A DNA stretch of 64,000 bases, from assembly GCA_021613535.1 (NCBI GenBank), contig CP075496.1, positions 13,206,001 through 13,270,000 on the forward strand. The letters are read 5' to 3'. A program made the translations under genes and the position numbers. The notes under the pieces were generated by a model that saw nothing but the letters and a program-made list of their open reading frames with translations, made no database searches and was not told where the DNA came from. This DNA is from Adineta vaga (lineage: Eukaryota; Animalia; Rotifera). This document shows, piece after piece, positions 1,253 to 60,100 of this stretch (the stretch's first letter is position 1; each line of letters starts with the position of its first letter).

Positions 1253-3443
1253 ATAAGGATGTATTATTTTTTTTGTTTCTTGTTTGAAAATAAAACTACA
1301 GATTTTGCTATTTTGCTTTTCTGTAAAACAATCTTTAATGAGATTGAACATCTTATTTTTCTTCTCGATTAGGATCTGATAATAAATTTATCAATTATAA
1401 CAAAAACTAAATCTCTTTTCTTTTGTTTCTACTTATCGATTTGCATCACTACTGTTACTAATATGATCATTAGCACAGAAGTATATTGAAGACAGTATCT
1501 CTTATAGACTTTGGTGTCAAAATACATCAAATTAATGTATATTTACATGGAAAAAGATTTTCGCTTAAAAAATAAAGAGTTCAATCATTTACAAAAGTAT
1601 CAGTGATAAACGAGAAAATAGAATATATAGGTTATTTTTTGATTGTATAATAATTTTAATTTCTTATCATATTTTATACGATAAAAATACTTCATCTGTT
1701 CAATTCATTTCTTTCTTTTTCTTGTCACAACTTATTGTCTTGACAATTCTTCTCAATTAACTTTCAAAAACAGATTTTTCAAATATATATAAATCAATTC
1801 ATTTCATATGATGTCTCTTCGTTGTCATCATCATTGCATCTCACCACGTGAAACATCAACGGTTATTTCATTATTCATGTCATACGTCAAAATTTCAAGT
1901 GACTCGTGAACAAATTGAAAAAAAAGACGAAGAAGAAGATGTTCATCATGCGTGTCAAGTAAAGAGGTTGTAGATGATGACTATTCTTCAACATATTCTT
2001 TTTTCTTCTCACTTTATAACAATCAATTCAATCTTGGTTATCACTTATTTTACACATTTTAATCCTATTCGTTCAAAAAGTAACAAACAACACCAGTTAC
2101 AAGTTGTCTTCTCCTATTAACTACTACAAATTCTATTTCCGTTTTGTTTAATATACCGATTTCCGTTTTTTATCATTCATTGTTTTACAATAGAACAAGG
2201 CGGTGAAATAAATAGCTTAATATATAGATGACTTATCAATAGAAAGTAATGAGTTCAATGTAATCAAGCATGTACAGTTCAAGCATCTCTTATATAAAAT
2301 ACAAGATCACAAGAGAATGAACAAGCGCTTGTGAGAAATCGAAACACAATTCATTAACATCAATGTTCAAACTTATTCTTAAAGAAAATAGTTTTTCTCA
2401 CAAAGCACATATAAAGATCTTTTTATTTTTTTTCAATCGATACACAAATAGAAATCTAACCTCTTCCGTAATCGATTACCGGAACAAATTGAAAGGAAAA
2501 AATCAATTGAAACAATACACAGATATATGATCATATTAGACTCAAGCAAGGAAAATGTTCATCAATAATTGAAGAGAAAGTTGCATGTTGCAATTTGATC
2601 CTTCATTATTATTGTACAGCTATTTCTTTTTAGCAAGAAAGAGTATATTTGCCTCTTAGCAAATTTTCTTTTTCTATGTCAATCACTCCAAATTTCAAAG
2701 TGCTCTTCTACGCTCCGATTGGCAGTATGAAACGATCGAAAGAAAGAATCTCTTTACCGTTTAATTCGCGTTTTTCTTTCGTCAATAATTGATTGATTAA
2801 AGAAAGGGGGGAAACTTTCTTAGAAGAGCTTATTGGTGTCCATGAACAGCAGAAAGTAAAAAAATGTTATTGTTCTTATTGAGTGTTGTTGTTATCATCG
2901 AATTAATGACGCCCATATAGCAAAAAAAGTTAAACCAATCAGATTCTTTTTTTTGCTCTTTAACATATCAATTAGATTCATTCGATTTATTTCGTAATTC
3001 TTACTTTTTTTTCTCGTTTCGTCTGCTTATATTGTTTGTACATTTTCATAATACGTTCTTTTTCTCTTTTCTCCTCCCTTTATCTCATTCATTTCATGTA
3101 CGGATCAGCTTAGTTTCATTCATCGATGCCGCTTTTATTGAGTATCTGGCCTCTTGAGCACACATACATATACATATTAAGTTAACAAATGGAGGGAGAG
3201 AAAGAAGAGAGAACTATATTTTTACCTGCAAGCGTTATGAATGGTAGATGCTCGTCGTCATTTAATTTTTTTCTTTCTCTCTCTTTCTCTTTCTCTCTCT
3301 CTCGACAATGATTGGACACTAATGGAAGCTGATCCGACTCTGCATTCGTCGAACTAATCGACAAAATGAGAATTTTGATTGCCTGCCTGACATAAACACA
3401 CATATACACACACACGCGCACACACATACAATATATATAGAAA

Positions 3444-40100: not shown

Positions 40101-40411
40101 TCATTATCTTGTGTTACTGAATTCAAAGACGGAAATGATTCTAATAATACCTTTATCATCATTTGAAAGACTTGTCTAACAATAGAAATCAAATTTAAAA
40201 TAAAGAAATCTTTCTCGAGATTTTCATGAAAAATATTAAATCTTATATTTGTAATGATAAAATCTAACCGTATTGATTCATATTATACAAACAAATGACA
40301 TATCTGGCATTTTTCTTGACAGAATTCTTTGATCTATAATTAGAGCGATAGAAATACAAGAGAAGAATGAGGACAATTGAGTCTATCGATTGAATCGATA
40401 GTAAAATAGAG

Positions 40412-41179
40412 TCATTTCACAACATTCTTTTGCCATACTTGTTGTAAATCCATTTCTGACACAAGACTTGCTCGATGATGATTCTGTTGTACTAATGATA
40501 ATCTTTTGATGTTTTCTTTTGATATTTCTACTTGTTTGTTGTTCTTGTCAAGTAAAGCTTGAGTTCTTAATGATATAAATGATGGATTTCTCAATAAGAG
40601 TACTGCTAAATGCCACTTTCGAATTGCTCTTGATGAATAATCTTTCTTTTTTTGTTTCTCAATTTGAATTGTTGGTAAGATTGAATTATATTGTTGTGCT
40701 TTCATTCTCCCATATAAATAACTTGCACATACTAACATAATTGGATTACGATGAACAGCTTCAAATTGAATAAAACCACAATAAGCAGAAAATCCTGCAT
40801 CGAATGTTTCAAGTTTTCTTCCTAAAGGTGAATAATCAAGACGACACATGTATAAAAATCCACCAATGATACTTTTAATGATTCGTATAATCGATGAAAC
40901 TAAACCAAGAAATGCATCAAGAAAGAAATTAAAATATAAAAATATCATCAAAACACGACGATTATTGATCGCTAATATATCACCATAATGTTGTAAAAAG
41001 ACATATCTTGCTAAAATATTATTTAGATATTGTTTAAAAAAGATTAATAATAGAACAGGTATGATTTTTTTCAGAATTGTTTCAAGAAATTTAACACTAC
41101 CATATTGAATAAATGCAGCGATACACATATAGATAAGAAATGCAAATGCTGCTATTAATACATAACCCCAAGTAAGATA
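40412..41179 (-). pseudogene. 5'-truncated STRA6-like gene copy (3' about 255 codons)
   Basis: 40408-41160 appears identical to 57101-57853 (offset 16693); cut off at the hAT-like element at 41180. Confidence 0.85.
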
Positions 41180-41798
41180 CAGTGGCGTAACCACGATTTT
41201 CAGGCTAATGGGCAGACTTCTATTGCTTCCAAAAACAACAATGGGCAAATTGGGCAATAGTTTTATTGATAGGCCAGAACCTTTGGTCCCAATAAAGTAC
41301 TGATAACATAGAAAAAGCATTAAAAAAATGAAACGAGGGTTTTTAAGCAAACACGCATCAGAATCAGGTCCTAGCTCTGAGCCAAGTGTATTTTTGGTCT
41401 ATTTTGATGTCTTTTTTTTATAACACGTTTATGTTTCAAATTCAGAGACCAAAATCAAGACGACGAGAACTCATTTGCGTATATAATTCCATTATTTCAT
41501 CTAGATTAATATCGAGATCTTTATGAATGTATGCACTAGGCAAGGCCATTGAGCCTGCTCTGTTTCATTGTAGATCTACAATCATTTTTAATTCTCGATC
41601 ATTGGCTAAAACTTGTATCAGCAGAAGCTGTTGATACAGGCAATGTTGCCCAAAAAATCAATCATTTTGTACCCTTCTTAACTGGTCACTGTTTTCCCGA
41701 GAAAATCGGACTCATTTTCTCGTATAAACTTGTGAAAAAGTAAAATTTCAATCGGCAATTGCCCGTTTGCTCACCCACCCCCTTTGGATACCCCACTG
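41180..41798. mobile_element. Non-autonomous hAT-like TIR element (619 bp)
   Basis: Termini CAGTGGCGTAACCA and, reverse-complemented, CAGTGGGGTATCCA (12/14 match); both flanking genes break exactly at the termini; no matching 8-bp TSD. Confidence 0.65.
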
Positions 41799-42408: not shown

Positions 42409-43345
42409 TCAAATCTTATTCCCTTTTCTGAAAGAAAGGGTTATATGCTTCTTAAATAGGGTCGTTAAAATGCGTAAAGTTTGTTTGTTTGTCCAAGCCA
42501 ATCAGGTGAAAGCAGCGTATAAATCGATGAAAGCTTACCCCTGGTCATCGGACAACGATTCGTCGTATGTAATCGAGATCGAGGAATACGAATCTTGGGT
42601 TCCTTCCCCAAAAATATTTTTCTATGAACCATAATTAATTAATTGCTATTTCTTATTTGTCTAATCCAGTCAGATGGCAGCAATATAAAAATTCATGAAA
42701 ATTTACTAATAATCATCTGTAAATGATTTACCCAAAAGTAATCGAAGTCGAGGATTTCAAATCTGATGTTAGCTTTTCACAATTCTAAACAATTATTATT
42801 ATAATTATTGCGAAACTGAAAATAACCTTTTATTAAGCATAAAAGAAAAAATTCTGACTGTGAATTATTTAATAAAGCTACTGGGTTCATTGAAGAAATA
42901 TTTTTTCAGTAGAAGTTGAGGGTGTGGGTCTGCAAGGGAGGAAAAGCGGATCCTGGATACCCAAATCCTATAAAACTCTCGCAACCTCATGGGTTATCAT
43001 TGGTCATCATAAACTGTGTGATCGCAGGAACTATGAGGATCCGCCTTTTCCCCTTGTGTGGATGTTTGTAAGTGCGTACTCTGTCAAGGAACACTTACAC
43101 CCACACCTTGTTCCTTCCACAGAAAGGAGCGTCATATGGAAAAAAGTTTCTGTGCGCTTTTGTGTCAGTGTCAAAGGTCAAAAAACCATTTTCTTCAAGA
43201 CTGTCTTAAACATCGGAAACCGAGACTAGATTAAGGGTAGGACGATAGGTGGAGTCAATGTGAAGGATCAAGGTTTAAAAGTTAAAGTCCGCACCAGATC
43301 AAAATATTGCTCTACCCTTCAGTACGAGCTAAGTACGCGCTTTCG
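42409..43345. mobile_element. Possible Helentron/DINE-1-like non-autonomous element
   Basis: TTATTCCCT...AGGGTTATA short inverted repeat followed by a (GTTT)n-GTCC microsatellite; internal hairpin AAGGGAGGAAAAGCGGATCCT...AGGATCCGCCTTTTCCCCTT (42933-43054); higher GC; boundaries uncertain. Confidence 0.3.
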
Positions 43346-44269
43346 ATAGATATAATATGAGATTACAATCAGTCGGTCGTTATTTATTCATAAAATCATT
43401 AAAAGTTTAGTAATATTGAAATAGAAACTTGATCATTCTAGAGATGATAATTCAATAAATGAACACATAGGTAGAATCGAACCCGTAGCAGATTTGAGAA
43501 AAATAAAGTACAGTAAAATTTGTCTAGTTTGAACACTATTGGAATCAATGAAAAACGTAGGGGAATAAGCAAATCATATAAGAACATCTTAGAGATACGA
43601 TGGCATAGACATGAAACAGTCTCAGTTAACTCGGTGAGAGTCAGACTCGAACTTAGTTTATACTTTCATGTGTTTTCTTGTGCTTTTGAGAATATTTCAT
43701 ACACCACCAATTGTTCATAAAAGAAATTTATTTCACACATCACGATACGATGAACCGGCTTTGTTTTCTTCAATTCAATTAATTTTCTTGTTAAGATCTT
43801 TAAGGATAGACGTATTTGAAATAAAAATTGCCTTACGTCGAACTAATAGAATGAAATTATAGTTTATGAGGGTATGGAGCGTGAGCGTGAAAAGTAGAGA
43901 CTATCGGTAACTACCCTCAAAATTTCCTTTTCTGATTGAACTTTTGTTGAATATCCCATGCAAAAATATCCTTTCTTAAAACGAACTCTTTTGTAAAACT
44001 CAAAAAATTACTAATGAAAAATACGTATCTTGAGTGTATACTGACACTGATAATCACACACGTCAGACGAAACTCCACTCAATACATACGTTAACGCCAT
44101 CTTTCTGCATAAACGAGCTATTCGCTTTTGTTGAAATCGTCAGATTTCATTATCTTTTTCGAATAACAAAAATACAATACTATCAGTAAAGCGAATTTCT
44201 TTTCATAACAAACAAAATATATTCAATAGCTTGTATTCTCAACAAACTTTCGTGGAATTTAAAGCGAAT

Positions 44270-47200
44270 ATGTACACATTTTCAACATTACCGATTGAAC
44301 TCGTCTATCGAATTTTGGATCATCTGTCTGATTTTACACTATTTTGTTCAATGCAGAATGTTTGCCAACGTTTTAATCAAATTCTGAACATTTATCATCG
44401 ATATGAAGTAAGTTTGCAAAGTGCTTTACCTATTTTCTCATCTGTCCAAGGAAACATGAGCCTCGCAATATCTAACTTAATCAGTTTACTCAAAGAAAAA
44501 AAAAATTTCACAATTCCAAAGCAATTTCCACGAGTCAACCAAACACAATATTGACTCATGCTATTAAAACAACCCTTCCTCTCAACTGTTCTTTTCTATC
44601 TATGCCCATCGAATATATATCTCATTAAACGTGCACTGATTTGCCGCACAAGAATAAAACTGCAGCATTAAAACACCTTTCCCGTTTCAAACAAATGTCT
44701 CTATTGCAACGCTTAAACAATGCAACAACTATCTTTGAAACCAACCGAATAAAATAAAGTAAATTGTATTATATTCTACCCCGACTCATTACGATCTTTA
44801 GCAAACCAAATCTAAAAATAACAATCCAAAGCCATTCGAAATCAACAAGTATCACTATCTTCAGTAGAGTACTCACTCTACTCATCCGCCGATTCGAACA
44901 TTAACTCAGTAATAATTAGACAAGCAACGATTTCTCTTTTCACTCCATGCACCCACATCGAACACTTTCACACAATACCGCCACACCTCTTGTATAATGC
45001 TATCTCTAATTGAAAAACCTTACTCTAAAGTTCCGATTGCTTTACCAACATTCTCGAAACTTATATTCTATACATAGACACTCACCACACTACATCTCGG
45101 GGACAGTGAAATCGGTGATCAAGGAGCACAGCATATTGGTGATGCCTTGCGAATAAACACGGTAACACTCATTCGCTCTTGTTCTAATTGATACATTCAT
45201 GCTCTCTCTCCTCTATAGACACTCACCACACTAGATCTCCGATACAATGACATCGGTGATCAAGGAGCACAACATATTGGTGATTCCTTGCGAATAAACA
45301 CAGTAATATTCATTCGCTCTTGTTCTAATTGACACATTCATGCTCTCTCTCCTCTATAGACACTCACGACACTACATCTCGGGCACAATGAAATCGGTGA
45401 TCAAGGAGCACAACATATTGGTGATTCCTTGCGAGTAAACACGGTAATATTCATTCGCTCTTGTCCTAATTGACACATCCATGCTCTCTCTCGTCTATAG
45501 ACACTCACCACACTAGATCTCCGATACAATGACATCGGTGATCAAGGAGCACAACATATTGGTGATTCCTTGCGAATAAACACGGTAACACTCATTCGCT
45601 CTTGTTCTAATTGACACATTCATGCTCTCTCTCCTCTATAGACACTCACGACACTACATCTCGGGGACAGTGAAATCGGTGATCAAGGAGCACAACATAT
45701 TGGTGATTCCTTGCGAATAAACACAGTAATATTCATTCGCTCTTGTCCTAATTGACACATCCATGCTCTCTCTCCTCTATAGACACTCACGACACTACAT
45801 CTCGGGGACAGTGAAATCGGTGATCAAGGAGCACAACATATTGGTGATTCCTTGCGAATAAACACAGTAATATTCATTCGCTCTTGTCCTAATTGACACA
45901 TCCATGCTCTCTCTCCTCTATAGACACTTACCACACTAGATCTCGGTGGCAATCGAATCGAACATCAAGGAGCACAACATATTGGTGATGCCTTGCGAAT
46001 AAACACAGTAATATTCATTCGCTCTTGTCCTAATTGACACATCCATGCTCTCTCTCCTCTATAGACACTCACCACACTAGCTCTCGGTGGCAATCGAATC
46101 GAACATCAAGGAGCACAACATATTGGTGATTCCTTGCGAGTAAACACGGTAATATTCATTCGCTCTTGTCCTAACTGACACATCCATGCTCTCTCTCGTC
46201 TATAGACACTTACCACACTAAATCTGTGGGACAATCGAATCGGTGATCAAGGAGCACAACATATTGGTGATGCCTTGCGAATAAACACGGTAACACTCAT
46301 TCGCTCTTGTTCTAATTGACACATTCATGCTCTCTCTCCTCTATAGACACTTACCACACTACATCTCGGGGACAGTGAAATCGGTGATCAAGGAGCACAA
46401 CATATTGGTGATTCCTTGCGAATAAACACGGTAACACTCATTCGCTCTTGTTCTAATTGATACATTCATGCTCTCTCTCCTCTATAGACACTCATCACAC
46501 TAGCTCTCGGTGGCAATCGAATCGAACATCAAGGAGCACAACATATTGGTGATGCCTTGCGAATAAACACGGTAACACTCATTCGCTCTTGTTCTAATTG
46601 ACACATTCATGCTCTCTCTCCTCTATAGACACTCACGACACTACATCTCGGGCACAATGAAATCGGTGATCAAGGAGCACAACATATTGGTGATTCCTTG
46701 CGAGTAAACACGGTAATATTCATTCGCTCTTGTCCTAATTGACACATCCATGCTCTCTCTCGTCTATAGACACTTACCACACTAAATCTGTGGGACAATC
46801 GAATCGGTGATCAAGGAGCACAACATATTGGTGATGCCTTGCGAATAAACACGGTAACACTTATTCGCTCTTGTTCTAATTGATACATTCATGCTCTCTC
46901 TCCTCTATAGACACTCACCACACTAGATCTCGGTGGCAATCGAATCGGTGATCAAGGAGCACAACATATTGGTGATGCCTTGCGAATAAACACGGTAACA
47001 CTCATTCGCTCTTGTTCTAATTGATACATTCATGCTCTCTCTCGTCTATAGACACTCACCGCACTAGATCTCGGGCACAATGAAATCGGTGATCAAGGAG
47101 CACAACATATTGGTGATTCCTTGCGAGTAAACACGGTAATATTCATTCGCTCTTGTCCTAATTGACACATCCATGCTCTCTCTCGTCTATAGACACTTAC

Positions 47201-47567
47201 CACACTAAATCTGTGGGACAATCGAATCGGTGATCAAGGAGCACAACATATTGGCGATTCCTTGCGAATAAACACGGTAACGCTCATTCGCTCTTGTTCT
47301 AATTGATACATTCATGCTCTCTCTCCTCTATAGACACTCACCACACTAAATCTCAAGAATAATCAAATCGGTGATCAAGGAGCACAGCATATTGGTGATG
47401 CCTTGCGAATAAACACAGTAACACTCATTCGCTCTTGTTCTAATTGATACATTCATGCTCTCTCTCCTCTGTAGACACTCACCACGCTAGATATCGGGGG
47501 CAATCAGATCGGCGACCAAGCAAGAAAGTATCTCCGAAGTACTTTTGGAAATAGTTTGACTTTGTAG
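44270..47567 (+). CDS. F-box + 18 RI/NLRC3-type LRR protein (552 aa predicted); exon 1 44270-44407 (F-box), 17 LRR exons of 84 nt starting at 45078+141n (n=0..16), last exon 47475-47567
   Basis: Exon 1 MYTFSTLPIELVYRILDHLSDFTLFCSMQNVCQRFNQIL (F-box) ends phase 0 at GTAAGT; each LRR exon reads TLTTLxLxx(N/S)xIGDQGAQHIGD(A/S)LR(I/V)NT flanked by TAG/GTAA; no stops or frameshifts in any exon; last exon TLTTLDIGGNQIGDQARKYLRSTFGNSLTL*. Confidence 0.9.
45078..47520 (+). repeat. Tandem array of 141-bp units (84-nt exon + 57-nt intron), 17 full units plus a partial 18th
   Basis: Exact 141-bp periodicity with no indels; unit starts at 45078, 45219, 45360 ... 47334, 47475. Confidence 0.97.
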
Positions 47568-50300
47568 TTTGGACTCAAGGGACATTGTTATTAGTGCTCT
47601 TTTATGGAGAATTTTTTTAGAAGAAATCGATGTGGTGAGAAATGAATATACAGTTTGTTTCGAAGTCGTATTTATCGTACAATAACGTGTTTGGTTCTAA
47701 CTTCTTGATTTCCGACTGTAAGAGATGTGTTCGTCATGTAAGTTTCTGATTGGTATATGTCGAAGATAGCGAAATCCTGTTTTTGAAATGCAGTATAATT
47801 TATCAGTTGAAGTTTCATGGGTATCATATGAAACCCTGTGAAACTGCCTACTCTTAATATACTGTCTTCTGAAAATTTTTCAATAGTGGAATGGTTATGA
47901 TGAAGAAGGGCGAACGTCGATGCGTCTTATGAGCCTTTGAATGGGTCCGCTGCACTTATTCCCATCGCTGATCTATTAGGAACGACTGGGAAATCATTTC
48001 TTAAACATTCTGTTGTGCATGAAAACGTAGCAAAATATTTTTCTGAACTTTATTTTGAATATTTCTCGTAATAGAGAGTTTAGTTTAAAGTCTGAGTGTC
48101 TCACAAATCGTTATTATATTTGTAACGTTAGAGAGTTGGGGTTGACGTCAAGATAAAGTGGATGAAGGGTTTGACAACTTTATTTAGTTGCTTCTTTGAT
48201 TTGACGTTTGATGTCTAATGATAGAAAAATGTTTTGTATTCGAACATCTTTCAAGATAAAAAAGAAAGTTTTAGAGAAAAGAGTGTATCTCAGTCTCAAC
48301 TAGCTAATGTGTAGAGACACATTTTAGGATATAAATCGCATCTGGATGCAACTTCCGATATATTCGAGCTTCACTGAAAGACGGCGAAATGCATTTGTAA
48401 ACACAAAGAGTGTTTCATGTTTACATAGTGACTCGTACTTATATTCCCTTCCTATTCATTATCATTCTGAGAATTACAAGAGTATGATTAATTCAAGAGT
48501 GGTAAAGTCGTTCTGTCTTGAGTTTACACATATTTCTTTTTGAATATATCCATCATCGGTGTCGATGAAACCGACTATACTAGATCTATCGAAGTTTTTC
48601 ATGCTATGCATTCAAATAATTATACATGATAATGAACATTTAGATGTTGAATGCACATCCAAAATAGTTTCTTTATCTAATATGAAGATTTTGTTTATTT
48701 GAGAAATCAATGTGAACTGCTTTTCTGAATTCATCGATTATCATGAACATTCTTCTAAAATATACCATCGACGCATGTATCATGACATTCGTTTCATTGA
48801 ACCAATGGCATATTGATCACTGACTTTTGGACTATGAATATATTGATGAAGTATATAATTGTCGTATTTACAATAAATGGAAATTTTCTTTCATATAATA
48901 TTGGTATTTTAACAAAGATAAGATTATATCTGACACGAATTAACAAATAATATCTAACATTAGTCGAAAAGAGATAACAAAATTAATGATAAACTTTGTT
49001 TGGTTTGATTTAATCAATTTTGATTGCAATGCTCTAAATATATTTGTAAAAAATATCGAATTCGTATAATAGTTACCTATAACCTTTGAACAATTTCACA
49101 GCATCCTAACAATGAGAATTCAAATGAGTGTCGCATCATAACCAAGATGAAAATGAAGACATAATCAAACGTCATTCGAAAGACGAGCTTGTAAATTTTA
49201 AAATAATCGATTGTAAACGGATATTATCCATTGTCATAATTAGGTAAATAACTATTGAATCCATACAAAAAATTCAATAAACTCTTTTTCTTTATTTTTT
49301 AATACTTGGTGTTTCTAGATAAAAACTTTCTCTTCCATCAGAAAACATAAACATTTTGACCAAAATTATAGAGTATATGATTGTTCGTTCTTTTTTCAAT
49401 GTTTTAAATTCTAATGAAATCAAATAATAATGTTGATGTCTTGCGTAGAAGAAGTTTTTCTTTTCTACTTTCATGGCAAGAGAGATAAAAACTTTCATAT
49501 TTAGACTTACGAAATGAGAACAAAATTAAAAATGAACATTTCGTAAATCTCATCTATATTTCTACTCATTTTGTTTCTTATTTATAGACAAGCAGTAATT
49601 TATTAGAGCAACTATATTTTCATTTAATTATCATAAGTGTTCTAATCTTTTTTGATCATTGTCTTTGAAGGTAATATTTGTTTAAAGCATCATGTGATAT
49701 ATCCTTCTCATTATCGTCTTTCGATAGATCCCTATTATTTTATTCTTCTATAGAATAATGTTGTCTATTCATTTATGTAAATCTAGGTTTACAATAGAAG
49801 ACCTTCTGGAATACTCGACTGTTTTTTTCGAAACCTATTTAATTCTCATTTGATCGTATCTTACGTTAATATTATGAGAAACTATGTTTTATTTCAGATT
49901 CTCTCAACATTAAAAATCTATTGTGGAACACTTTCATATTATTTTCCTTCGACACAATTTGAGATCAATTACCTGTATACTTTCCGAAGTATACACAATA
50001 CATTATGACTTTCTCATATAGCTCAATGGAATATTAACTCGTTGATAATTCAATATATTGTAATCAATTGATTTGTTTATTATCGTGTGTTCCATAATTT
50101 CGTTATTTATCAGTAAATTTATTACGTCAATATGGTCCTACACAATCAAATTTATATGACATGATGTTGATTAATTTGACATATGCATCTTTTAAATTCA
50201 AATCCGAAGCAGTTGATATTTTTGAACAATTTTTTATCAATCATTTTTCTTCTATTGAAATTTTATTCATCGCATCAGATATTAGATGCATGAAAGTCAA

Positions 50301-52634
50301 CTCTGAAAATAAAAAAGGAGTTTTCCAGAACCTTTTTGGGGGTTCGGCCCGCTGGTAAAATTCAGAACCCACAAAAAGGTTCTGGCTCATAGACGGTTCT
50401 GTTAAAACCTAACAGAACTCTTCATTATTCTATACAAAAATAAGGTTCAGTCTGACATAAAAGGTGTGTTAAATGGTTTTTCAGAAAATTATTTTCTCTT
50501 TATATCTATGTTGATTTGTAGACATATTCCAGTGTTGCAAGTGCGCGTGTTTATGTTAACCTCTCAAATAGACCGAAAAAGTGAATTAAGCTACAGTCGA
50601 ATCACGCTTTTTGCTTGCTGCTGATTGGCTTAATTCAGCCCTAACCTAATTCACTTTCTCAGTCTGTTTTTGACCTTGTAATGTAAACAGACGCACTTGC
50701 AGTACTTGAATACGTGTACAAATCAACCTAGATATAAAAAGAAAATCATTCTACTTATTTTGTTTCTAATATTCCACTTATCATTTCTCTGCGATATAGG
50801 TCGGTCTAAATATAAAAGAAGAAAATATTTAGTTTTCTATATAAAATATAACTCACATTTCGTTAGACTTCGTTCTGAATCTAAATGACAGTAGAAAATA
50901 TTTAATCTAAAATTCAAAATATCACTTAACTTTAATCAGATATGGCTATGAACCGAAATGATAACAATAAATATTTAACATATTGTTTTGAAAATAACTC
51001 ATTTTTACCCACATATCTATACAAACCTAAATGATAATAGAGAATGTTTCATTTCTTATTTGAAATATTACTTACTCTTAATCAGATATCGATATGTACC
51101 TATACAACAATAAGAAATATTTCATATGATATTTAGTTTCGAAAGCTGTCCGAATAGAAAGAGGGATTGAACAAGTCGTATTGAATATATCTCTTGATAG
51201 CTTCTGAAAGACTTGAAATCTGTGGATGAAATTCGATGTAGATTTCGATAACATTCTAAGAATCTGAGTACTGCATAAACCAAAAACAAAAGTTGGGTGT
51301 AGCAATTAAAAGAATTTTTTTCGCAAACTTCAATCACAAAATGGTTTTGGTAAAAAGTCACCATTTGGGTCACTTATCATCTTTCATAGGTTTTATGCGG
51401 GACCCATGCTTTGAAGTTAAATTTTCGGGTATTATAAAATCCTCAGCCCGTCCCTGTCTGCTAGTCTCATTATATAAAGATATCTTCTATGCTCAAGGGT
51501 ATACAAATACCCCTACATACTATCAGTTGATGACTGCGTGATATCTCTACATAATCGAATAGAGGAACCGCTGAAAAAGATCATTTTATTTGTAAAGAAT
51601 ATTTTTGAAAGATTGAGCTCGGTGAAATGATAAACTTTTGAATAATTCTTTAGTTCATTTCATCAGAGTTCATGGACTTGAGCTGATCAACTCCTACCCT
51701 CTATTGTTGACATAACATATAAGTTAGTTTGAGCTATATTAGAGTCGTTCTCTGTTAACTTGTAACTGGCCTGAACATGATTTTGTTACATGTAAGTAAT
51801 AAGAGAAAAACCTCCCTCAGATTTGGATGACTGAAAAATTGCTTGGAATAATCATATACTGATAGTGGACTCCCACCATCGTCGATGCAAAACATTAAGT
51901 TGTTCAGTTCATACCTAAGATCGTTATTGACAACTTGAAATGGCCAAAGCATTTCCGTTTTTTATCATGACAAAAATCAAAAGAGAAAAGAAAGTTGTTA
52001 AATTGTTGTTGACTTGCATGAACAAACGAACGTATATACATTTTTTGAGTGTGTGACTCTCTTCTTCAGTTGAGAAAACTTACGATACTCCAACATTCAC
52101 TGGAGCAGCTATATCAGGTTGCGGATTTTAGAGAAGAAACTTTACATTTAGTAACGTCGAAGGAAAAAATCTCTATGATTCAATATTATCAGACCGAACC
52201 CTTTCAAAATGAGTATTTTTGGGCAGAACCCTTTTGGTTCAAAATAAATAAAACAGAACTTTTTAGGGTTCGGGATTTAATAGGCAGAACCATTTCGGTT
52301 TCTTACAAGCCTGTTCATAAGCTTACATGGTTTCGGATTGGTGCACAGAACTTTTTAAAGTTCTGCAGTTGTCCTACCGAACCAACTGGATTCAGTTTCG
52401 TCTCACGAAGGAGTTTTTAAGGTTCAGTAGAAAAATAACTAAACCTTCTGTAGTTTAAGGGATGACTGACAGAACTTTTCATAGTTTAGAATTGTCAGAC
52501 AAAACCCTTTGTAGTTCAGAATTGTTGCCCAGAACCTTTCTTGGTTTCTCATATGTCATACAGAACCTTTTCTGGTTCTAGAGATGTTACAGAATCCAAA
52601 AAGGTTTTGGATCACTCCTTTTCTTCTTTCAGAG
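50301..52634 (-). mobile_element. Decayed CACTA/EnSpm (CMC)-like DNA transposon
   Basis: About 40-bp imperfect TIRs (CTCTGAAAATAAAAAAGGAGTTTTCCAGAACCTTTTTGG vs reverse-complemented CTCTGAAAGAAGAAAAGGAGTGATCCAAAACCTTTTTGG); many subterminal AGAACC/GGTTCT repeats; minus-strand remnants VYRSFV...LWPFQVVNNDL.RYELNNL resemble the Tnp2 WP...NELP motif. Confidence 0.6.
50560..50680. repeat. Small foldback/MITE-like inverted repeat nested in the CACTA-like element
   Basis: CAAATAGACCGAAAAAGTGAATTAAG is paired with CCTAATTCACTTTCTCAGTCTGTTTTTG. Confidence 0.5.
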
Positions 52635-52799
52635 GATAGATAAAAACAATTAATATCATTATATTTATCAAATTCACGTATTTTTAATGTTCGACTAGTA
52701 CCGATCGGTCCACAGAAAGAATATCTAAATAGAGGATTTTGTTCAGTTTTCGATGCTGTATCTTTTAGTACATTAAACGAATAATTTCATAAAGCTCTT

Positions 52800-53043
52800 C
52801 CCAGGTCGAAAAATCCGATATTGGATCCGATAGGACATTATTGGATTCTTGGTGACGGATCTGTATTGGATTCCGTCAGTAGAATTTCCGTCAGAAGCTG
52901 CAAATTTTATGAGCGTTCTTTTTTGCTATATTTTATTGTGGTCTTATGGCTACCTGTCGGATCCGTCGAAATCCGTTTTTTGGAAACTATAGTATGCTAT
53001 GTTGGATCCGATCGGATTCGAGTATCCGATTGGTCGACCTGGG
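52800..53043. mobile_element. 244-bp MITE with CCCAGGTCGA termini and TT target duplication (CMC-like)
   Basis: TT|CCCAGGTCGAAAAATCCGATA ... TATCCGATTGGTCGACCTGGG|TT; internal TCGGA/TCCGA repeats. Confidence 0.8.
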
Positions 53044-53809
53044 TTAGAGTCTAAATAAATCTCAATTTCTGGGCGTATCTTTTGACAAATCTCAAAATAG
53101 TTTCGGGAGTGGTTGTCAGTAAAATTGATGTATTTTTTTATTCGTTCAACCAGATGCACTAAAAATTTGGATCTCGAGGTTTTCAATGAAGCTGAACAAA
53201 ATCAAAACATAAAATCAAGAAAAAGAAATTTTGACGAGTGTTTCTTCTTTTTAAGAGAGTTTTTTAAAGAATATAGATGCGTTAATCATCATTATAGTTC
53301 TTTCAGAGAGGGGTCAGCGAATCCTACGGATGAGCGTTACTTGTTTTATAGCTGAGTATTGGCGGAATCAAATCTATTTATAATATTTTTACTTTTGTTT
53401 TACTTCTGAGTACGAAAAGGAAAAATATGAAATAAAATGTGTCTACAATACTCTTTTAAAAAGAAACTTCCAAAGAATAATATAGTCCAATTAATTTATT
53501 AAGAATCAATTAAATTATTTCCTATTATTCACATGAATAATATGTGTCATGTTGTTTTCTCTTTCTTTATTTAAATATCACGAACAGATCCTATTTTTGT
53601 CTCTTTTATTCTTTCGTTTCTGACCATACATAGCCTAGACCATGTTATAACGATCGTTACTTTTCTTCTTTCTATTCTCGAAGTTTCTATATTTTATTTT
53701 CATATCGTAAAGTTCGACATATTCAACAACATTCATTTAGTTAGTGACTACTGCTGTTTGTTGTATTCACCTTTTGTTTTTTTTATAGCCTATATTTGTC
53801 TGATTAATT

Positions 53810-55496
53810 CCCAGGTGAATGAAAGCGGCCACGTTTACGGTATGTAAACGTTCCGTAAACGTTTTAAAAACGGCATCTTTACGGTATGATACGGTATCAA
53901 TTCGGACCGTATTTTCAGGCACAGAATTACGTATCGTAATGTGTCCGTTCAGTAAACGTTCCGTATTCGGTGGTTTTCTAGGAATTATCGGATAGCAGAC
54001 GGTAGTATGTTTTACACCACATTGAGGCCGTTTTTGACCGAAAATGGGCCGATTTATATCCGTTTACACGAATCAGTATCTGTCATCTCCACAATAACTT
54101 AATTTTAAATCACCCACCTCATTTATCAATAGCTCTTTGAGTTTGCTTCGAACTATAGTTAGACTTTATTATCACGTTCAATATAAAAAACAATAACAAC
54201 AAAAAACAATATCCAGGACGAGTAATCCGGTTTTCAGATCCGACGGAATCCTGTTAGATTCTCATAACTAAGCTAGATATCGTCTGCAACATGAACACTT
54301 CACTCGTCATTTTATTATATCTAATATATCAATCGCCCATAGTCTGATTGGATGACTGAGTTTTATTCTCATGGTGTTCTTGTAATATATCAGGAAACTA
54401 TGATTTGTTTACCAACTATGGTTTTCATATACGAGCTCGTATACGAGTACTGTAGCTGGTGAAAAAAACCATATTTATCTGACACATTACAAAAACACCA
54501 TCGAAACAGAAATCAGTCAGCTATAGCTAGACTAATCAGCACCACTTACTTGATTCATACTTATCAATAATCTAAGTTTTTAAAAAATTTATTTTAAAAA
54601 ATCTTACTTATTTTTCAACTAATGATTATACTCTAAAAGTAAACAATAAAATTCATTCGAAAAATTCTTACTGTTCAGTTGATTATTATAAATAATCTAA
54701 AAAAAGAAAAGAAAATTTATCTAAATAAAATTCTTACTTACTGTTCAATCTGATTTATTCCATCTAAAATTGCAAAACCAAAATAAATTTTGTCAGTAAG
54801 GTGACCCACCAATATACTCTCTCGTCAGTCACAAATTAGACTAGAGAATAGATCTTTCGAAATTATATGTGAACGAGAAAAACGAACTGACATAATAAAG
54901 ATGCTTCCAAAAAACATCGAAAGCTGATTACATTGAATGTCTATAGCATCTTTTATTTCGTTAGGTATATCTGCCTAGACGGTTGTGGATGTACAAAAAT
55001 ATAAAAATATAAATATAAAAAAACCTTGTGATTCAGTAATATGTATTGAAATTTCTATTCATTATTTATTATTTATATATGTATATTCGAATGTTAAGTC
55101 GTGTGTTTAACTATTTATATTTGAAGTTTTGTATAGATGGCGCCATAATTTGCACAATATATTAATTATATTTTTGTTTTACTTCTCACTCTCCATCTAT
55201 CTAGAAAATTACTTTTCATTTTATAAAAAATAATAATATTGTACAGAATGTCATATACCGGGATCTGTGGCCTTATTAAGTAGGTTTTCAGAAAAAACGG
55301 TTTAAAAACAGGGCGTAATCTGAGTTCCGTTTTCGAATAGAATTCGGTGCTCCGTAATACGGTCCGTAAATGGTGCGAAAAATATCCGTATTTACACCGT
55401 TAACTGCTGTCGGTATACAAAAAAAGTCGGAGATCCGTTTAGATGCCGTTTTTTATTGGTATACTGCCGTTTTCGGTCCGACTCGTTCGACCTGGG
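53810..55496. mobile_element. 1.7-kb non-autonomous element with CCCAGGT termini and TT TSD
   Basis: TT|CCCAGGTGAATG ... CGTTCGACCTGGG|TT; dense ACGG/CCGT subterminal repeats at both ends. Confidence 0.65.
54340..54535. repeat. About 200-bp foldback element with a central perfect palindrome TATACGAGCTCGTATA (54428-54443)
   Basis: Arms GACTGAGTTTTATTCTCATGGTGTTCTTGTAATATATCAG and CTGACACATTACAAAAACACCATCGAAACAGAAATCAGTC are imperfect reverse complements. Confidence 0.6.
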
Positions 55497-55792
55497 TTAT
55501 GACCATGGATTCAACTGCAACAGCAACTTTTGATGAATGATCAAGTATATATATTCAAATGAGAGGATCAAGTGAACATTTACAATTTGTTTATCGATTA
55601 ACTCTTGAATTTCAGCGATATATCCTGATAAGAAGAACAGAAGAATACAAAGATACAACTCCTTATAAATCAAGTGATGAAAGCAAAAACATCGATCTTC
55701 ATTTGTCTGAATTATCGGAAAAGTCTGGTATCTACAGACTTAATGTTCGAATAACCGATAAATCAGGCGTGGTCTTCACAAATAGAAATATA

Positions 55793-55945: not shown

Positions 55946-57104
55946 CAGAAAGAAGCTGCTAAAAATAAACTATATGAAAAGTTCCTATGGACAACGATAA
56001 AAGATAGGTATAAGTCAAGCATTTACATTCTAAAAAAATAAGATTTCTGTTTATTTTACAGTCGAATTTTTTAAATCATCTCACAATATCAAAAGTTCAA
56101 CAGTGAACATTTTAATAAATATCTATCTTTTTCATTTTCAATATATTGCATTTTTCTTCTGTGTTGAATGTGTTTTGTCTATTATTAAAGAATAGTGATT
56201 GCGTCATCGAATAAAAATATTTCATCATAAACTAATAACGATGGTAGCTACATTTCATTACTTTTCTACGGTCTTTTATTAGATTTATATATTCAATTAC
56301 GTGGATTTTAATAAATTTGATGCATCTAAGAATTCTCGAAAGGAGCTCATTATTAACAATACAATGATTTTTTTGAAAAAAAAAGCTGGTGAAGGTATAG
56401 AGTATGGCTATGGGTGAATCCTCTTCTTGAATTATACTTTCTTATTAGTATATAACGGGGTAGTTCTGTATTATAACGCTTTTATTAAAGACTTTTTCAG
56501 AAAATCAAACATTTTATTTCTGCTTTTCCGGTTGAAAAATTGCAGTGTTAAAAAAATATTTGGGATTACTTGCATCCTACTGCGCTCCTTCAAATTAGAT
56601 AGACAAGAAACCTGGAAAGGGTGGATTCATGGAGAATTTTGGTTTCAAAATGAATAATTTTTCACGTTTGTTTGCTGAATATCTTCCGATCGCATTGCGA
56701 TATAGAGATTGGTCCATTTATGCGTTTCATAGTAAGTCAGCTATAAAACTTGCACACCAATATATAAAATACTTGTAGTTTATTTAAATTTATATCAATA
56801 CATTCATTCAGTTTTTTTATGGTACAAAGTTTTGAAACTCGCTGCTGCTCATCGTTGTACTGATCATTTTGGCACAAGGTGGTAATGGTACAGATCAACT
56901 TTTCGCAGCAACATTTTTAATTTATAATTTCAGAACAGAACTCACAAAATACAATACTGCTAAGACAATTCTTTGAACATTAGAAGGTACTAGAAAACAA
57001 GTCCGTCTTTCTCACAGTCGAAGTTTCAGTGAGTTGAAACGACGAACATTATCTATATATATCACAGAAAGAGATTATTTGATACGATAATAAATAAAAC
57101 AGAG

Positions 57105-60100
57105 TCATTTCACAACATTCTTTTGCCATACTTGTTGTAAATCCATTTCTGACACAAGACTTGCTCGATGATGATTCTGTTGTACTAATGATAATCTTTT
57201 GATGTTTTCTTTTGATATTTCTACTTGTTTGTTGTTCTTGTCAAGTAAAGCTTGAGTTCTTAATGATATAAATGATGGATTTCTCAATAAGAGTACTGCT
57301 AAATGCCACTTTCGAATTGCTCTTGATGAATAATCTTTCTTTTTTTGTTTCTCAATTTGAATTGTTGGTAAGATTGAATTATATTGTTGTGCTTTCATTC
57401 TCCCATATAAATAACTTGCACATACTAACATAATTGGATTACGATGAACAGCTTCAAATTGAATAAAACCACAATAAGCAGAAAATCCTGCATCGAATGT
57501 TTCAAGTTTTCTTCCTAAAGGTGAATAATCAAGACGACACATGTATAAAAATCCACCAATGATACTTTTAATGATTCGTATAATCGATGAAACTAAACCA
57601 AGAAATGCATCAAGAAAGAAATTAAAATATAAAAATATCATCAAAACACGACGATTATTGATCGCTAATATATCACCATAATGTTGTAAAAAGACATATC
57701 TTGCTAAAATATTATTTAGATATTGTTTAAAAAAGATTAATAATAGAACAGGTATGATTTTTTTCAGAATTGTTTCAAGAAATTTAACACTACCATATTG
57801 AATAAATGCAGCGATACACATATAGATAAGAAATGCAAATGCTGCTATTAATATATAACCCCAAACAACATAACCAATAAAATATCCTGCAAAGTGAAAA
57901 TTTCCTGTTGTATAACTTAAAAATTTCGATTTATCTCGTTTGGGAATTTCTGAAACATCACCACGAAATATTTGAAATAGATTTCGTCGAATACTTCCTA
58001 ATAAAACCAACAATTGTATTGTTGTGATAACAAATGCTGTTAATATTGCAAGAACATATGGGATAAGAAATTTTGGCATTGGAAAATCTTTTTGTGTTCC
58101 TTGCGAAATATTGTTATAGGCTGTTAGTGCATCGACAATTGTTTGAAGAGTTTTTTCTAGGTCATCTAATAGTGGTACGACAAGTATACACGCTTGTATT
58201 GTTAAAATAAGTAATAGAAGAAGGACGGATGCATAAACAGAAATGATTCGTGCTGAAAAACGAAAATCATCTCGCCATTGATAAATAAATTTTGGTATTA
58301 ATCGTCCAATAAAATATCGAGTTGTTGAACGTTGATGATCTGCTCGAAAAAGATTTCGCACATAAGACATTTCAACAGAATATGGCATTGATGAATGTAA
58401 AAGAACTTTTTCTTCTCGTGTTAGACATAAAGAATTTAGACGATGACCTTGATGACGTTGAATTAATTTATGAATTTTTTGTATTAATAGTATTGGTAAT
58501 TTCACTACTATATATGACCAACATAAATATCGAGGAAGATCAGTTAGAATTTCTATAATTATTAAGTTTTGTCCTGTACCATAAAAAGAAAATAATGTCA
58601 TCAGATCTGTTCCGTTTGTTTCATTGAAATTATCATTTGATGGATAGTAATCACTTTGACATATACTATTATCGATGATTATAAGAGAAAAACCTAACCA
58701 AGCATATAAGGATGCACAAGTTAATGTTAAAATTGTATCGATATAAGCAGCGGATAAAATTGGATAATAACGAAGACCAATAACAATAACTTGTGCGATT
58801 CGTAATAAATAAACAACAATTACACCTAAAATAGACAAGATTTCGATGAGATAAGTGAATAGAATATATTTAAACCTTGATCTTTCGAAGTATCACCAAC
58901 AAGAACTTGTATGACAATACTTAAAAGTTCATCAGCAATAATAGCAAAGACTACAGCAGCAAATTTTCGTTTGACATGTATATAAAAATCTAATGGAATG
59001 ACAGGGCCAATATAACCTTTTAATTTCTTTCGTAAACATGTTGTTCGTTTGGAGAAAATTACGAAAACTAAGACGAGAAAACAAGCAATAGGAAATGTTA
59101 ATAAATTAAAATCACTATAATCGATTATAGCACAAAATGAATTTCTTTGATAGAATAATGGTTCGTTATCATTATATTTCTTAACTAATTCATCATGAAT
59201 TGGTTGAATAAGTAACCATTTAACAATTAATGCAACTATTGTTACAATTACCATAAGAATCGCAGTAAAACATGAGGAAAATCGAGCAGATTGTTTTACA
59301 TTAGCTAATGCAATATGTTTTAAATTTTGATTTTCTGCATTTATTTGATTTACTCTAAAAAATGCAAAGAATATTGACAGTGTTTTTTTAAAAGAGATAT
59401 TCAAATTCTACTTTGGTTTTTCCTTTTTTGGTTGTTGTCTTCTTCGACGAATTGTACAACCAATTGTAAGTCCATAGAAAATAACTATTAGAATAGCTAC
59501 TACGATTCCGAGTGTAATCACTTGAATACCACTACTCGATTCTAGAAAAATTTCAATATTCAATCGAACTATTTAATGTTCAGCATTTTATATATTGTTT
59601 ATAGTAAATTAAAATCTTTGACAGAAAATGCAAGAAAAAGGCTTCTTTCAACTTATGACAGATTAGAAAAATAATGAGAACTTTGTAAAAGTGGTTAACT
59701 CGACCTCTATCAAGTGTTTTCTTTTGATGAATATTTTCTTGTTGGTATCGTCTGAATAGAATAATTATTGAAAAACTATTTATATAGTCACGTATGTTTT
59801 CTTAGATTTCAGACAAATATATATGAAAAACTAGTTTGACGAAAATAAACTTTAACTATAGATAAATAATGACCGAATCAAAACTTACGTTCAGTACAAT
59901 ATGTTCCAATCCACCAAAATTTACATGTACATTCTGCATAGCCATTTACATCATCTGTACAATAGCCATACATTCCACATGGATTATACGTCGAACAATC
60001 TATACAAATAAATAAGTTCCAGATCACAGATCATGTTTTTAAAATTTAAAATAGTTACTTTGGCTTGCAACGATGGTCACGCTCATCCATAGAAATAAGG

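Follow-up and report, generated by a model that had tools for sequence, protein, structure and literature searches.

The analysed stretch of DNA (the window, 64,000 nt) corresponds to C4:13206001-13270000, a part of chromosome 4 of Adineta vaga, whose genome is represented by six contigs with a total length of 100.8 Mb. On its plus strand, the window contains an intact gene for an F-box protein with a long array of leucine-rich repeats (LRRs), each of which occupies an exon of its own, and the whole gene lies within a dispersed repeat unit of about 10.9 kb (Table 1). The sequence-only reading of this DNA had reasoned from the possibility that the host is a bdelloid rotifer, and A. vaga is indeed one.

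The coding region opens with the ATG of the F-box exon, which ends at a GTAAGT donor. Taken alone, this exon is matched by two Pfam models, PF12937 F-box-like (25.5 bits, cut-off 24.3; E 1.1e-5) and PF00646 F-box (25.0 bits, cut-off 20.5; E 1.7e-5). A tandem-repeat finder recovers the downstream array as a repeat of period 141 with 17.4 copies and 91% matches (45074-47520). Parsing in frame places the start of LRR exon i at 45078+141(i-1) for i = 1 to 17, and each of these exons is 84 nt long and encodes one 28-aa LRR of the ribonuclease inhibitor (RI) type that matches Pfam LRR_6. The introns of the array are all 57 nt long, are bounded by GT and AG, and carry two in-frame stops apiece, and every exon junction of the gene is in phase 0. 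The predicted full protein of about 552 aa thus consists of the F-box followed in frame by 18 LRR_6-type repeats. The parse agrees to the base with the earlier proposal of an F-box exon joined in phase 0 to 18 LRR exons, 17 of them of 84 nt with 57-nt introns, and this one-LRR-per-exon structure is far beyond chance. In pairwise comparison within the array, exons are on average 89.5% identical and introns 93.9%, and the exon differences sit in codons 6, 8-11, 13, and 14.

Table 1. Features of the F-box/LRR gene and of the dispersed unit that carries it (positions in the window).
Feature	Positions	Strand	Basis or remark
Dispersed repeat unit, about 10.9 kb, holding the whole gene	42414..53344	+	Shared ends of copies; 5' end +/-2 nt, 3' end exact
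5'-terminal stretch of the unit	42414..42815	+	First part recurs at gene-less loci
Exon 1: start codon and F-box domain, 46 aa (138 nt)	44270..44407	+	Pfam, GTAAGT donor, joints in RNA-type contigs
Intron 1, 670 nt	44408..45077	+	AG at 45076-45077; length conserved among paralogues
Array of 17 units x 141 bp (84-nt exon and 57-nt intron)	45078..47474	+	Tandem-repeat finder, frame parse, Pfam
Terminal exon: partial 18th LRR and C-terminal cap, 30 aa, stop TAG	47475..47567	+	Frame parse, contig of run X20
3' untranslated region, at least to 47679	47568..47679	+	Reach of the contig of run X20
3' part of the unit, no recognisable coding content	47680..53344	+	Copies 90-97% identical, block indels
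Palindromic insert, 264 bp, 72-nt arms with 83% complementarity; maybe a small nested element	50487-50750		Repeat search
Four 73-bp tandem repeats	50805-51134		Beside the palindromic insert

The window gene is one member of a family of at least 40-50 near-identical copies, which had escaped the sequence-only reading. Matches to the F-box exon occur at no fewer than 150 sites of the genome, 51 of which, distributed over all six chromosomes, share at least 76% amino acid identity with it, and a probe of three array units yields more than 200 genome matches at 79-96% identity. Most of the family loci (38/51; p = 6e-7) are located in the terminal 20% of their chromosomes. Twenty-one copies out of at least 51, namely the window gene and 20 fetched paralogues, were parsed with a profile of the 141-bp unit, and the same exon layout was observed at all 20 of the other loci. 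The number of full units per array varies from copy to copy (1, 1, 1, 2, 2, 3, 4, 6, 7, 9, 10, 11, 11, 16, 17, 19, 20, 21, 22, 23, and 23), and the length of intron 1 is conserved, since the first LRR exon begins 1301-1309 nt into 17 of the 21 aligned loci. The same genome contains eight loci with a Skp1 domain.

The overwhelming majority of the full-length LRR exons (227/229) are 84 nt long, open, and flanked by AG and GT. In a neutral simulation at 8.4% divergence from the consensus, about 46 of the 229 exons are expected to carry a stop, with 30 or more in 99.5% of simulations, whereas the number of stops that arose by substitution in the observed exons is 0; the reading frames are therefore under selection. 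Defects are found in some copies: the terminal exon is shortened in four of the 21, and three show a frameshifted exon pair, an insertion of 1.3 kb, or the loss of the last acceptor, respectively. The frameshifted pair (units 18-19 of copy L039, C2:11563310-11572309, minus strand) has exons of 85 and 86 nt, the first with a stop, whose frameshifts sum to +3, so that the frame is restored. The insertion of about 1.3 kb (at 1859-3185 of copy L040, C5:7943787-7952786) splits the LRR array inside an intron.

Splicing was assessed on assembled contigs of public sequencing runs placed on the window. Joints of the GT..AG type at predicted exon edges are present in three RNA-type runs, and none was seen among the contigs of the DNA run. 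In one RNA-type contig, intron 15 is removed (joint 47135|47193). Another joins the F-box donor straight to an LRR exon start; the last codon of its F-box exon reads CAA, as in paralogues, and the contig is therefore attributed to a sister copy. A contig of run X20 joins an LRR exon end to position 47475 and continues from there for 205 nt, past the stop as far as 47679, without any mismatch. Given that the terminal-exon peptide of the window gene is unique among the 21 parsed copies, this contig shows that the window locus itself is transcribed and spliced. Within intron 1, the RNA-type runs have low-depth contigs only, which may represent pre-mRNA or carried-over DNA. Joints between non-adjacent LRR exons, with 198 to 1467 nt skipped, are seen in some RNA-type contigs; they are supported by only 21-31 nt of highly repeated sequence, so that exon skipping is inseparable from cross-matches to paralogues.

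The type of the repeats was assigned from their length and from a fold predicted with AlphaFold for a homologue of Adineta steineri (P0065, residues 1-245, an F-box followed by seven repeats), which stands in for the window protein. A second database protein, P0151, likewise represented the complete protein in the analysis, and the exons of the window gene were searched singly. The LRR part of the model has a predicted local distance difference test (pLDDT) score of 80-92, and the F-box part is not confident. Each repeat consists of a strand at positions 4-8 and a helix at positions 14-26, which puts positions 6 and 8 on the concave strand and positions 9 and 11 in the loop just after it. The best fold matches of the model are the LRRs of NLRP14, NLRP3, NOD2, and ribonuclease inhibitor. 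All window repeats are 28 aa long and, with one strand and one helix per repeat on the homologue model, belong to the RI and NOD-like receptor (NLR) type (RNI-like). The cysteine-containing LRR of FBXL proteins (LRR_CC, about 26 residues) was considered and ruled out, since the repeats have 28 residues and are structurally nearest to RI and NLR. The RNH1 and NLRP genes also have a modular exon structure in register with the repeats.

Variation among the 227 intact exons of the family is strongly uneven. Amino acid entropy is highest at repeat position 9 (3.0 bits), followed by positions 8 (2.7), 11 (2.1), 6 (1.5), and 14 (1.3), and stays below 0.5 bits at most other positions. Nonsynonymous diversity (pN) calculated codon by codon, without any grouping, reaches 0.50 at codon 8, 0.50 at codon 9, and 0.35 at codon 11, to be compared with an overall synonymous diversity (pS) of 0.149 and an intron diversity of 0.141. 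When codons are grouped, the pN/pS ratio is 1.4-2.0 for the five variable codons and 0.45 for the framework codons, and even pairs of units with identical introns differ at a quarter of the nonsynonymous sites in the variable codons. The five variable residues form 119 distinct motifs in 227 units, of which 100 are private to one gene; the window gene has nine such motifs, all of them (9/9) its own. These patterns suggest selection for amino acid change on the predicted binding face, at positions 8, 9, and 11 and, less strongly, at 6 and 14.

The arrays also change by whole units. In the window array, unit 3 is identical to unit 12 and unit 5 to unit 6, and units 9, 13, and 16 differ from one another by 2-4 nt. 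When the units are split into variable head, exon tail, and intron, these segments fall into 12, 8, and 10 types, respectively, which do not co-vary, and the window array is accordingly a mosaic. Introns are closer within a gene (p = 0.09) than between genes (p = 0.16). The two closest copies, L031 and L032, are 97% identical in the 5' region and have arrays that are collinear in a unit-level alignment except for five whole-unit gaps, with several aligned units differing by 10-15 nt. At a flank identity of 94%, the arrays of copy pairs are no longer collinear. Both observations indicate that the arrays turn over faster than the flanks diverge by point changes. Two expectations of the sequence-only reading are upheld by these data. 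Variation is concentrated at predicted ligand-facing positions, as judged from the peaks of entropy and pN at 8, 9, and 11 and from the mapping of the strand on the homologue fold; and reshuffling of cassettes by unequal crossover or gene conversion is borne out between copies, on an evolutionary time scale, as gain, loss, and mosaicism of units. Assembly like that of the variable lymphocyte receptors (VLRs) of jawless vertebrates finds no counterpart here: the germline gene is complete from ATG to stop, no donor cassettes were found outside the gene within the unit, and the DNA-run contigs contain no rearranged form, apart from a net difference of one unit in a single contig, possibly from a paralogue.

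The main addition to the sequence-only reading is that the gene travels in a unit of mobile type, which had been missed. All analysed copies have this unit in common. A common 5' end at window positions 42412-42419 is shared by at least 18 copies, and a common 3' end at 53344-53345 by approximately 26 copies, in both cases at 93-96% identity. In all 15 copies that were read (15/15), homology breaks off at one and the same base, beyond which the flanks bear no relation to each other. Identity to the paralogues is 92-97% in the 500 nt upstream of the gene and 85-95% in intron 1, and the copies are about equally distant from each other (approximately 94%), which corresponds to a star-like divergence. 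The sharp shared ends, the unrelated flanks, the equal distances, and the subtelomeric bias point to a burst of transposition and not to segmental duplication, so that the unit looks mobile and transposon-like.

The two ends of the unit differ in their distribution. The first 150-400 nt recur at about 20 loci without the gene (78-92% identity, start at query base 1-4, span 145-399 nt), and matches to the 3' end are nearly confined to F-box copies and to fragments of the unit. A shared 5' end combined with a private 3' end is what would be left by capture through read-through past a normal 3' end, and our best guess on the origin of the unit, made from its sequence, is the capture of a host gene by a Helitron-like element running past its normal 3' end. 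Two traits would fit a Helitron, i.e., the A|TC junction at the 5' end of the window copy and the T that follows ...CTTG in 15/15 copies. Other hallmarks are absent. The 3' end is CTTG and not CTRR, the last 70 nt fold no better than shuffled sequences (z = 0.43), and the 24 genome matches to the Helitron Rep domain (Helitron_like_N) are all remote from the copies of the unit and from those of its 5' end. Nearly all of these Rep matches are located within about 1.3 Mb of a contig end, most of them within a few hundred kb, and ten fall in the first 330 kb of C2.

Searches for other kinds of mobile-element signatures were also negative. No long terminal repeats or terminal inverted repeats linking the ends of the unit were detected in a repeat search (seed 11, minimum length 25), and no short inverted repeat was seen by eye. 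Ten stop-to-stop frames outside the gene, nine of which are the longest of the 3' part, gave no Pfam domain. No Rfam family was found in the unit, nor any hammerhead ribozyme even at E up to 1. The window copy, the single one with both flanks known, has no target duplication. Mobilisation by Penelope elements was considered and rejected, as terminal repeats and hammerhead matches are missing. Published work on A. vaga (PMC3846280, Arkhipova and colleagues) describes LRR and other repeat families that are amplified to higher copy numbers than transposons, the ability of Penelope elements to copy intron-containing host genes, and one LRR gene beside a Penelope terminal repeat. The present unit resembles Penelope copying, Helitron end-bypass capture, and Pack-MULEs in that an intact, intron-containing gene of host type is present in many dispersed copies with defined ends. 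It differs from Penelope copying in that no Penelope terminal repeats, hammerheads, or target duplications were found, and the hallmarks of Helitrons are only partly present.

Related genes occur in other bdelloids. Two other Adineta assemblies contain genes in which an F-box exon (46-47 aa) precedes a long first intron and a series of 84-nt exons with 57-58-nt introns, giving a period of 141-142, and the units are 76-77% identical to those of A. vaga. The same plan at such a distance makes the architecture older than the A. vaga burst. A search with the A. steineri protein as query returned many Adineta and Rotaria proteins with the same type of LRR behind an F-box, RING/B-box, ADP-ribosyltransferase, or U-box/kinase. 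A design of this kind, in which a single LRR sensor module is paired with various effector heads, is characteristic of host recognition repertoires and argues against a purely selfish origin. Among these proteins, P0154, P0158, P0191, P0192, and P0203 carry RI-type LRRs behind B-box/RING, NAD:arginine ADP-ribosyltransferase, or U-box and kinase domains, and some of them may be fusions produced by gene modelling. One A. vaga protein with RING, B-box, and LRRs is encoded on the 20.35-Mb chromosome.

The family has been present in GenBank since about 2010 in the form of unnamed, unstudied predictions. The 316-aa entry ADD91459.1 ('leucine rich repeat containing protein [Adineta vaga]') corresponds to paralogue L042, and the splicing of its LRR exons agrees with the present prediction. 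The F-box part of UJR34376.1 (Adineta vaga) is 98% identical to exon 1 of the window gene; this entry, labelled 'partial', is a model of the sister copy L032 (C4:14589277-14598276) that combines 172 aa of an unrelated upstream gene with the F-box exon and omits all LRR exons. An N-terminal extension of the window gene was consequently rejected, as the 172 aa lie outside the unit and come from the neighbouring gene of the paralogue. Compared with 1.8 billion representative proteins, the F-box exon retrieved almost only short fragments of open reading frames (ORFs), but pointed the way to named entries of A. vaga and A. steineri. The bdelloid entries (ADD91459.1, CAF0899067.1 of A. steineri, and others in Adineta and Rotaria) share with the window gene the same F-box family followed directly by 28-aa RI-type LRRs, and the A. 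steineri gene also has 84-nt exons, with introns of 58 nt; they differ in being unnamed predictions without analysis. A literature search found no dedicated study of F-box/LRR families in bdelloids. Since the introns all carry stops and the exons are only 84 nt long, current gene models miss or truncate these genes, and the family is under-counted in comparative studies.

On these grounds, the window contains an intact, transcribed gene that probably encodes a substrate receptor of a Skp1-cullin-F-box (SCF) ubiquitin ligase and belongs to an amplified, fast-diversifying germline family borne by a unit that looks mobile. The most likely function, to judge from the domains and their variation, would be that of an SCF substrate receptor drawn from such a repertoire. 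The immune role and the foreign targets envisaged in the sequence-only reading are unsupported by these data. The N-terminal F-box would dock on Skp1, as is expected from its domain family, and the 18 RI/NLR-type repeats of 28 residues would form a solenoid with the substrate on its concave face. The gene was apparently spread to dozens of loci by some form of transposition of the 10.9-kb unit. Since then, every array has gone its own way, gaining and losing whole 141-bp units and recombining into mosaics, for which the near-invariant 111 nt (exon tail, intron, and head of the next exon) would serve as homology. Selection keeps the exons open and spliceable and appears to favour change at positions 8, 9, and 11, with a weaker effect at 6 and 14. 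The outcome is a germline-encoded, fast-evolving repertoire of putative F-box receptors, in which each copy has a private set of binding-face motifs.

Several points weigh against this interpretation. The three runs that supply the joints are RNA by guess, and their contigs are short, so that a full-length transcript and the level of expression are beyond their reach. The docking on Skp1, the solenoid, and the substrate on its concave face are predictions. A mobile element is proposed for a unit with no recognised transposase, terminal repeats, target-site duplications, or empty site, and the comparison of flanks among copies refers to the side beyond the 3' end. The variable codons were chosen from the same data in which they were then evaluated; the per-codon table of pN avoids grouping, but recombination among units breaks the assumptions of pN/pS counts. 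Finally, part of the family may be decaying, considering the four shortened terminal exons, the three other defects, and the several copies with 1-3 repeats.

A more far-reaching version of the proposal is tentative, and we would not bet on it. It holds that an unrecognised class of mobile element, or a Helitron-like element with a new 3' end, carries the complete F-box/LRR receptor gene and has seeded dozens of copies subtelomerically in an asexual animal, and that the element, together with the expansion, shrinkage, and binding-face diversification of the array at each site, generates a germline repertoire of ubiquitin-ligase receptors for defence against pathogens or selfish DNA.

The alternative that survives best, an unlikely one in our opinion, is that the gene is passive cargo, i.e., a captured host gene amplified by a non-autonomous element, which has little or no function, decays slowly, and has relaxed surface residues. 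It would account for the transposon-like unit with sharp common ends and the star-like divergence, for array lengths from 1 to 23 units, and for the degenerate copies (four of 21 with shortened terminal exons, one with a lost acceptor, one with the 1.3-kb insertion, and one with two frameshifted exons). It does not account for the 229 exons without a substitution stop, against about 46 expected, or for the GT and AG retained by all 227 intact exons. The framework pN/pS of 0.45 and the architecture kept in other Adineta at 76-77% unit identity speak against it as well, and pN at codons 8, 9, and 11 exceeds the silent and intron levels by a factor of 2.4-3.4, beyond anything that relaxation can produce.

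We give little credence to the possibility that the F-box/LRR protein serves the element, hijacking the host SCF to destroy restraining factors such as silencing proteins and being drawn thereby into an arms race that would explain the rapid evolution of the binding face. F-box proteins that hijack the host SCF are known in some viruses and bacterial pathogens, the gene is the sole recognisable one in a unit with transposon-like ends, and its binding face appears to be under positive selection. However, the same exon layout is present in other bdelloids, the pairing of RI-type LRRs with other effector domains is a pattern of host repertoires, and no transposition enzyme was found in the unit.

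Slightly less credible still is the diversification of a single site by somatic or regulated means, through combinatorial exon skipping or through somatic rearrangement of cassettes as in lamprey VLRs. The internal exons, all of 84 nt and in phase 0, would allow any skip to keep the frame, and some RNA-type contigs do join non-adjacent exons; yet these joints rest on 21-31 nt on one side within a 17-fold repeat that has more than 40 paralogues and are therefore unplaceable, the germline gene is complete and has no flanking donor cassettes, and the DNA run is essentially free of rearranged forms. An array collapsed or expanded by assembly is hardly believable: short-read contigs cannot confirm exactly 17 units, but 20 other loci have the same architecture with different unit counts and private motifs, the layout recurs in a clone-derived GenBank protein of 2010 and in independent assemblies of other species, and parts of this DNA are represented in DNA contigs of nine studies.

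The F-box/LRR receptor reading invites comparison with several known systems. Expanded and positively selected families of F-box and MATH-BTB ligase adaptors in Caenorhabditis and plants are said to have been described by Thomas in 2006, reportedly with the proposal that their targets are foreign proteins. The A. vaga family resembles them in its large, lineage-specific expansion, conserved docking domain, diversifying substrate domain, and clustering along chromosome arms, and differs in its RI-type array with one repeat per exon and 1-23 repeats, spread in a transposon-like unit. With ribonuclease inhibitor and the NLRs (NLRP, NOD2, and NLRC3), it shares alpha/beta repeats of 28-29 residues and the best structural matches, whereas the A. 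vaga gene has an F-box in place of a NACHT or other nucleotide-binding domain, and its exon corresponds to one 28-aa repeat and not to an A+B pair. Vertebrate FBXL proteins (Skp2, FBXL2) and plant TIR1/COI1 likewise combine an F-box with an LRR solenoid as SCF substrate receptors, but their LRRs are shorter and cysteine-containing, and they are single conserved genes that are not hypervariable. The VLRs of lampreys and hagfish similarly use LRR modules as cassettes and vary on the concave face. They are, however, secreted or membrane-bound proteins with 24-aa repeats and caps at both termini, and they are assembled somatically from flanking donors into an incomplete gene. The A. vaga gene is complete and of a cytosolic type, and its variation is confined to differences between germline copies.

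Bdelloids lack conventional sex and possess few classical immune receptors, which raises the question of how they keep up with pathogens and selfish DNA. The present family is a concrete, testable candidate for a part of the answer, comprising dozens of intact F-box receptors with predicted binding faces that are almost wholly different between copies. Their repeat number is subject to rapid change, and the copies seem to have been spread by transposition.

The surroundings of the unit are also rich in repeats. A segment of about 16 kb that holds the unit is bracketed by a direct duplication of 778 bp (40402-41179 and 57095-57872, 99% identity). Both copies fall within ORFs on the minus strand. 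The ORF around the left copy (40412-41350, 312 aa) has a match to the C-terminal portion of Pfam RBP_receptor (STRA6-like, E 3e-33), and the one around the right copy (57105-58838) is 577 aa long. Near the 3' end of the unit, a piece of approximately 75-100 nt (52946-53045) recurs alone at about 15 other loci with 84-94% identity and may be a small nested repeat. Just past that end, another dispersed repeat (53804-55497) has copies of 95-97% identity on C2, C1, and C6 that are unlinked to F-box genes.

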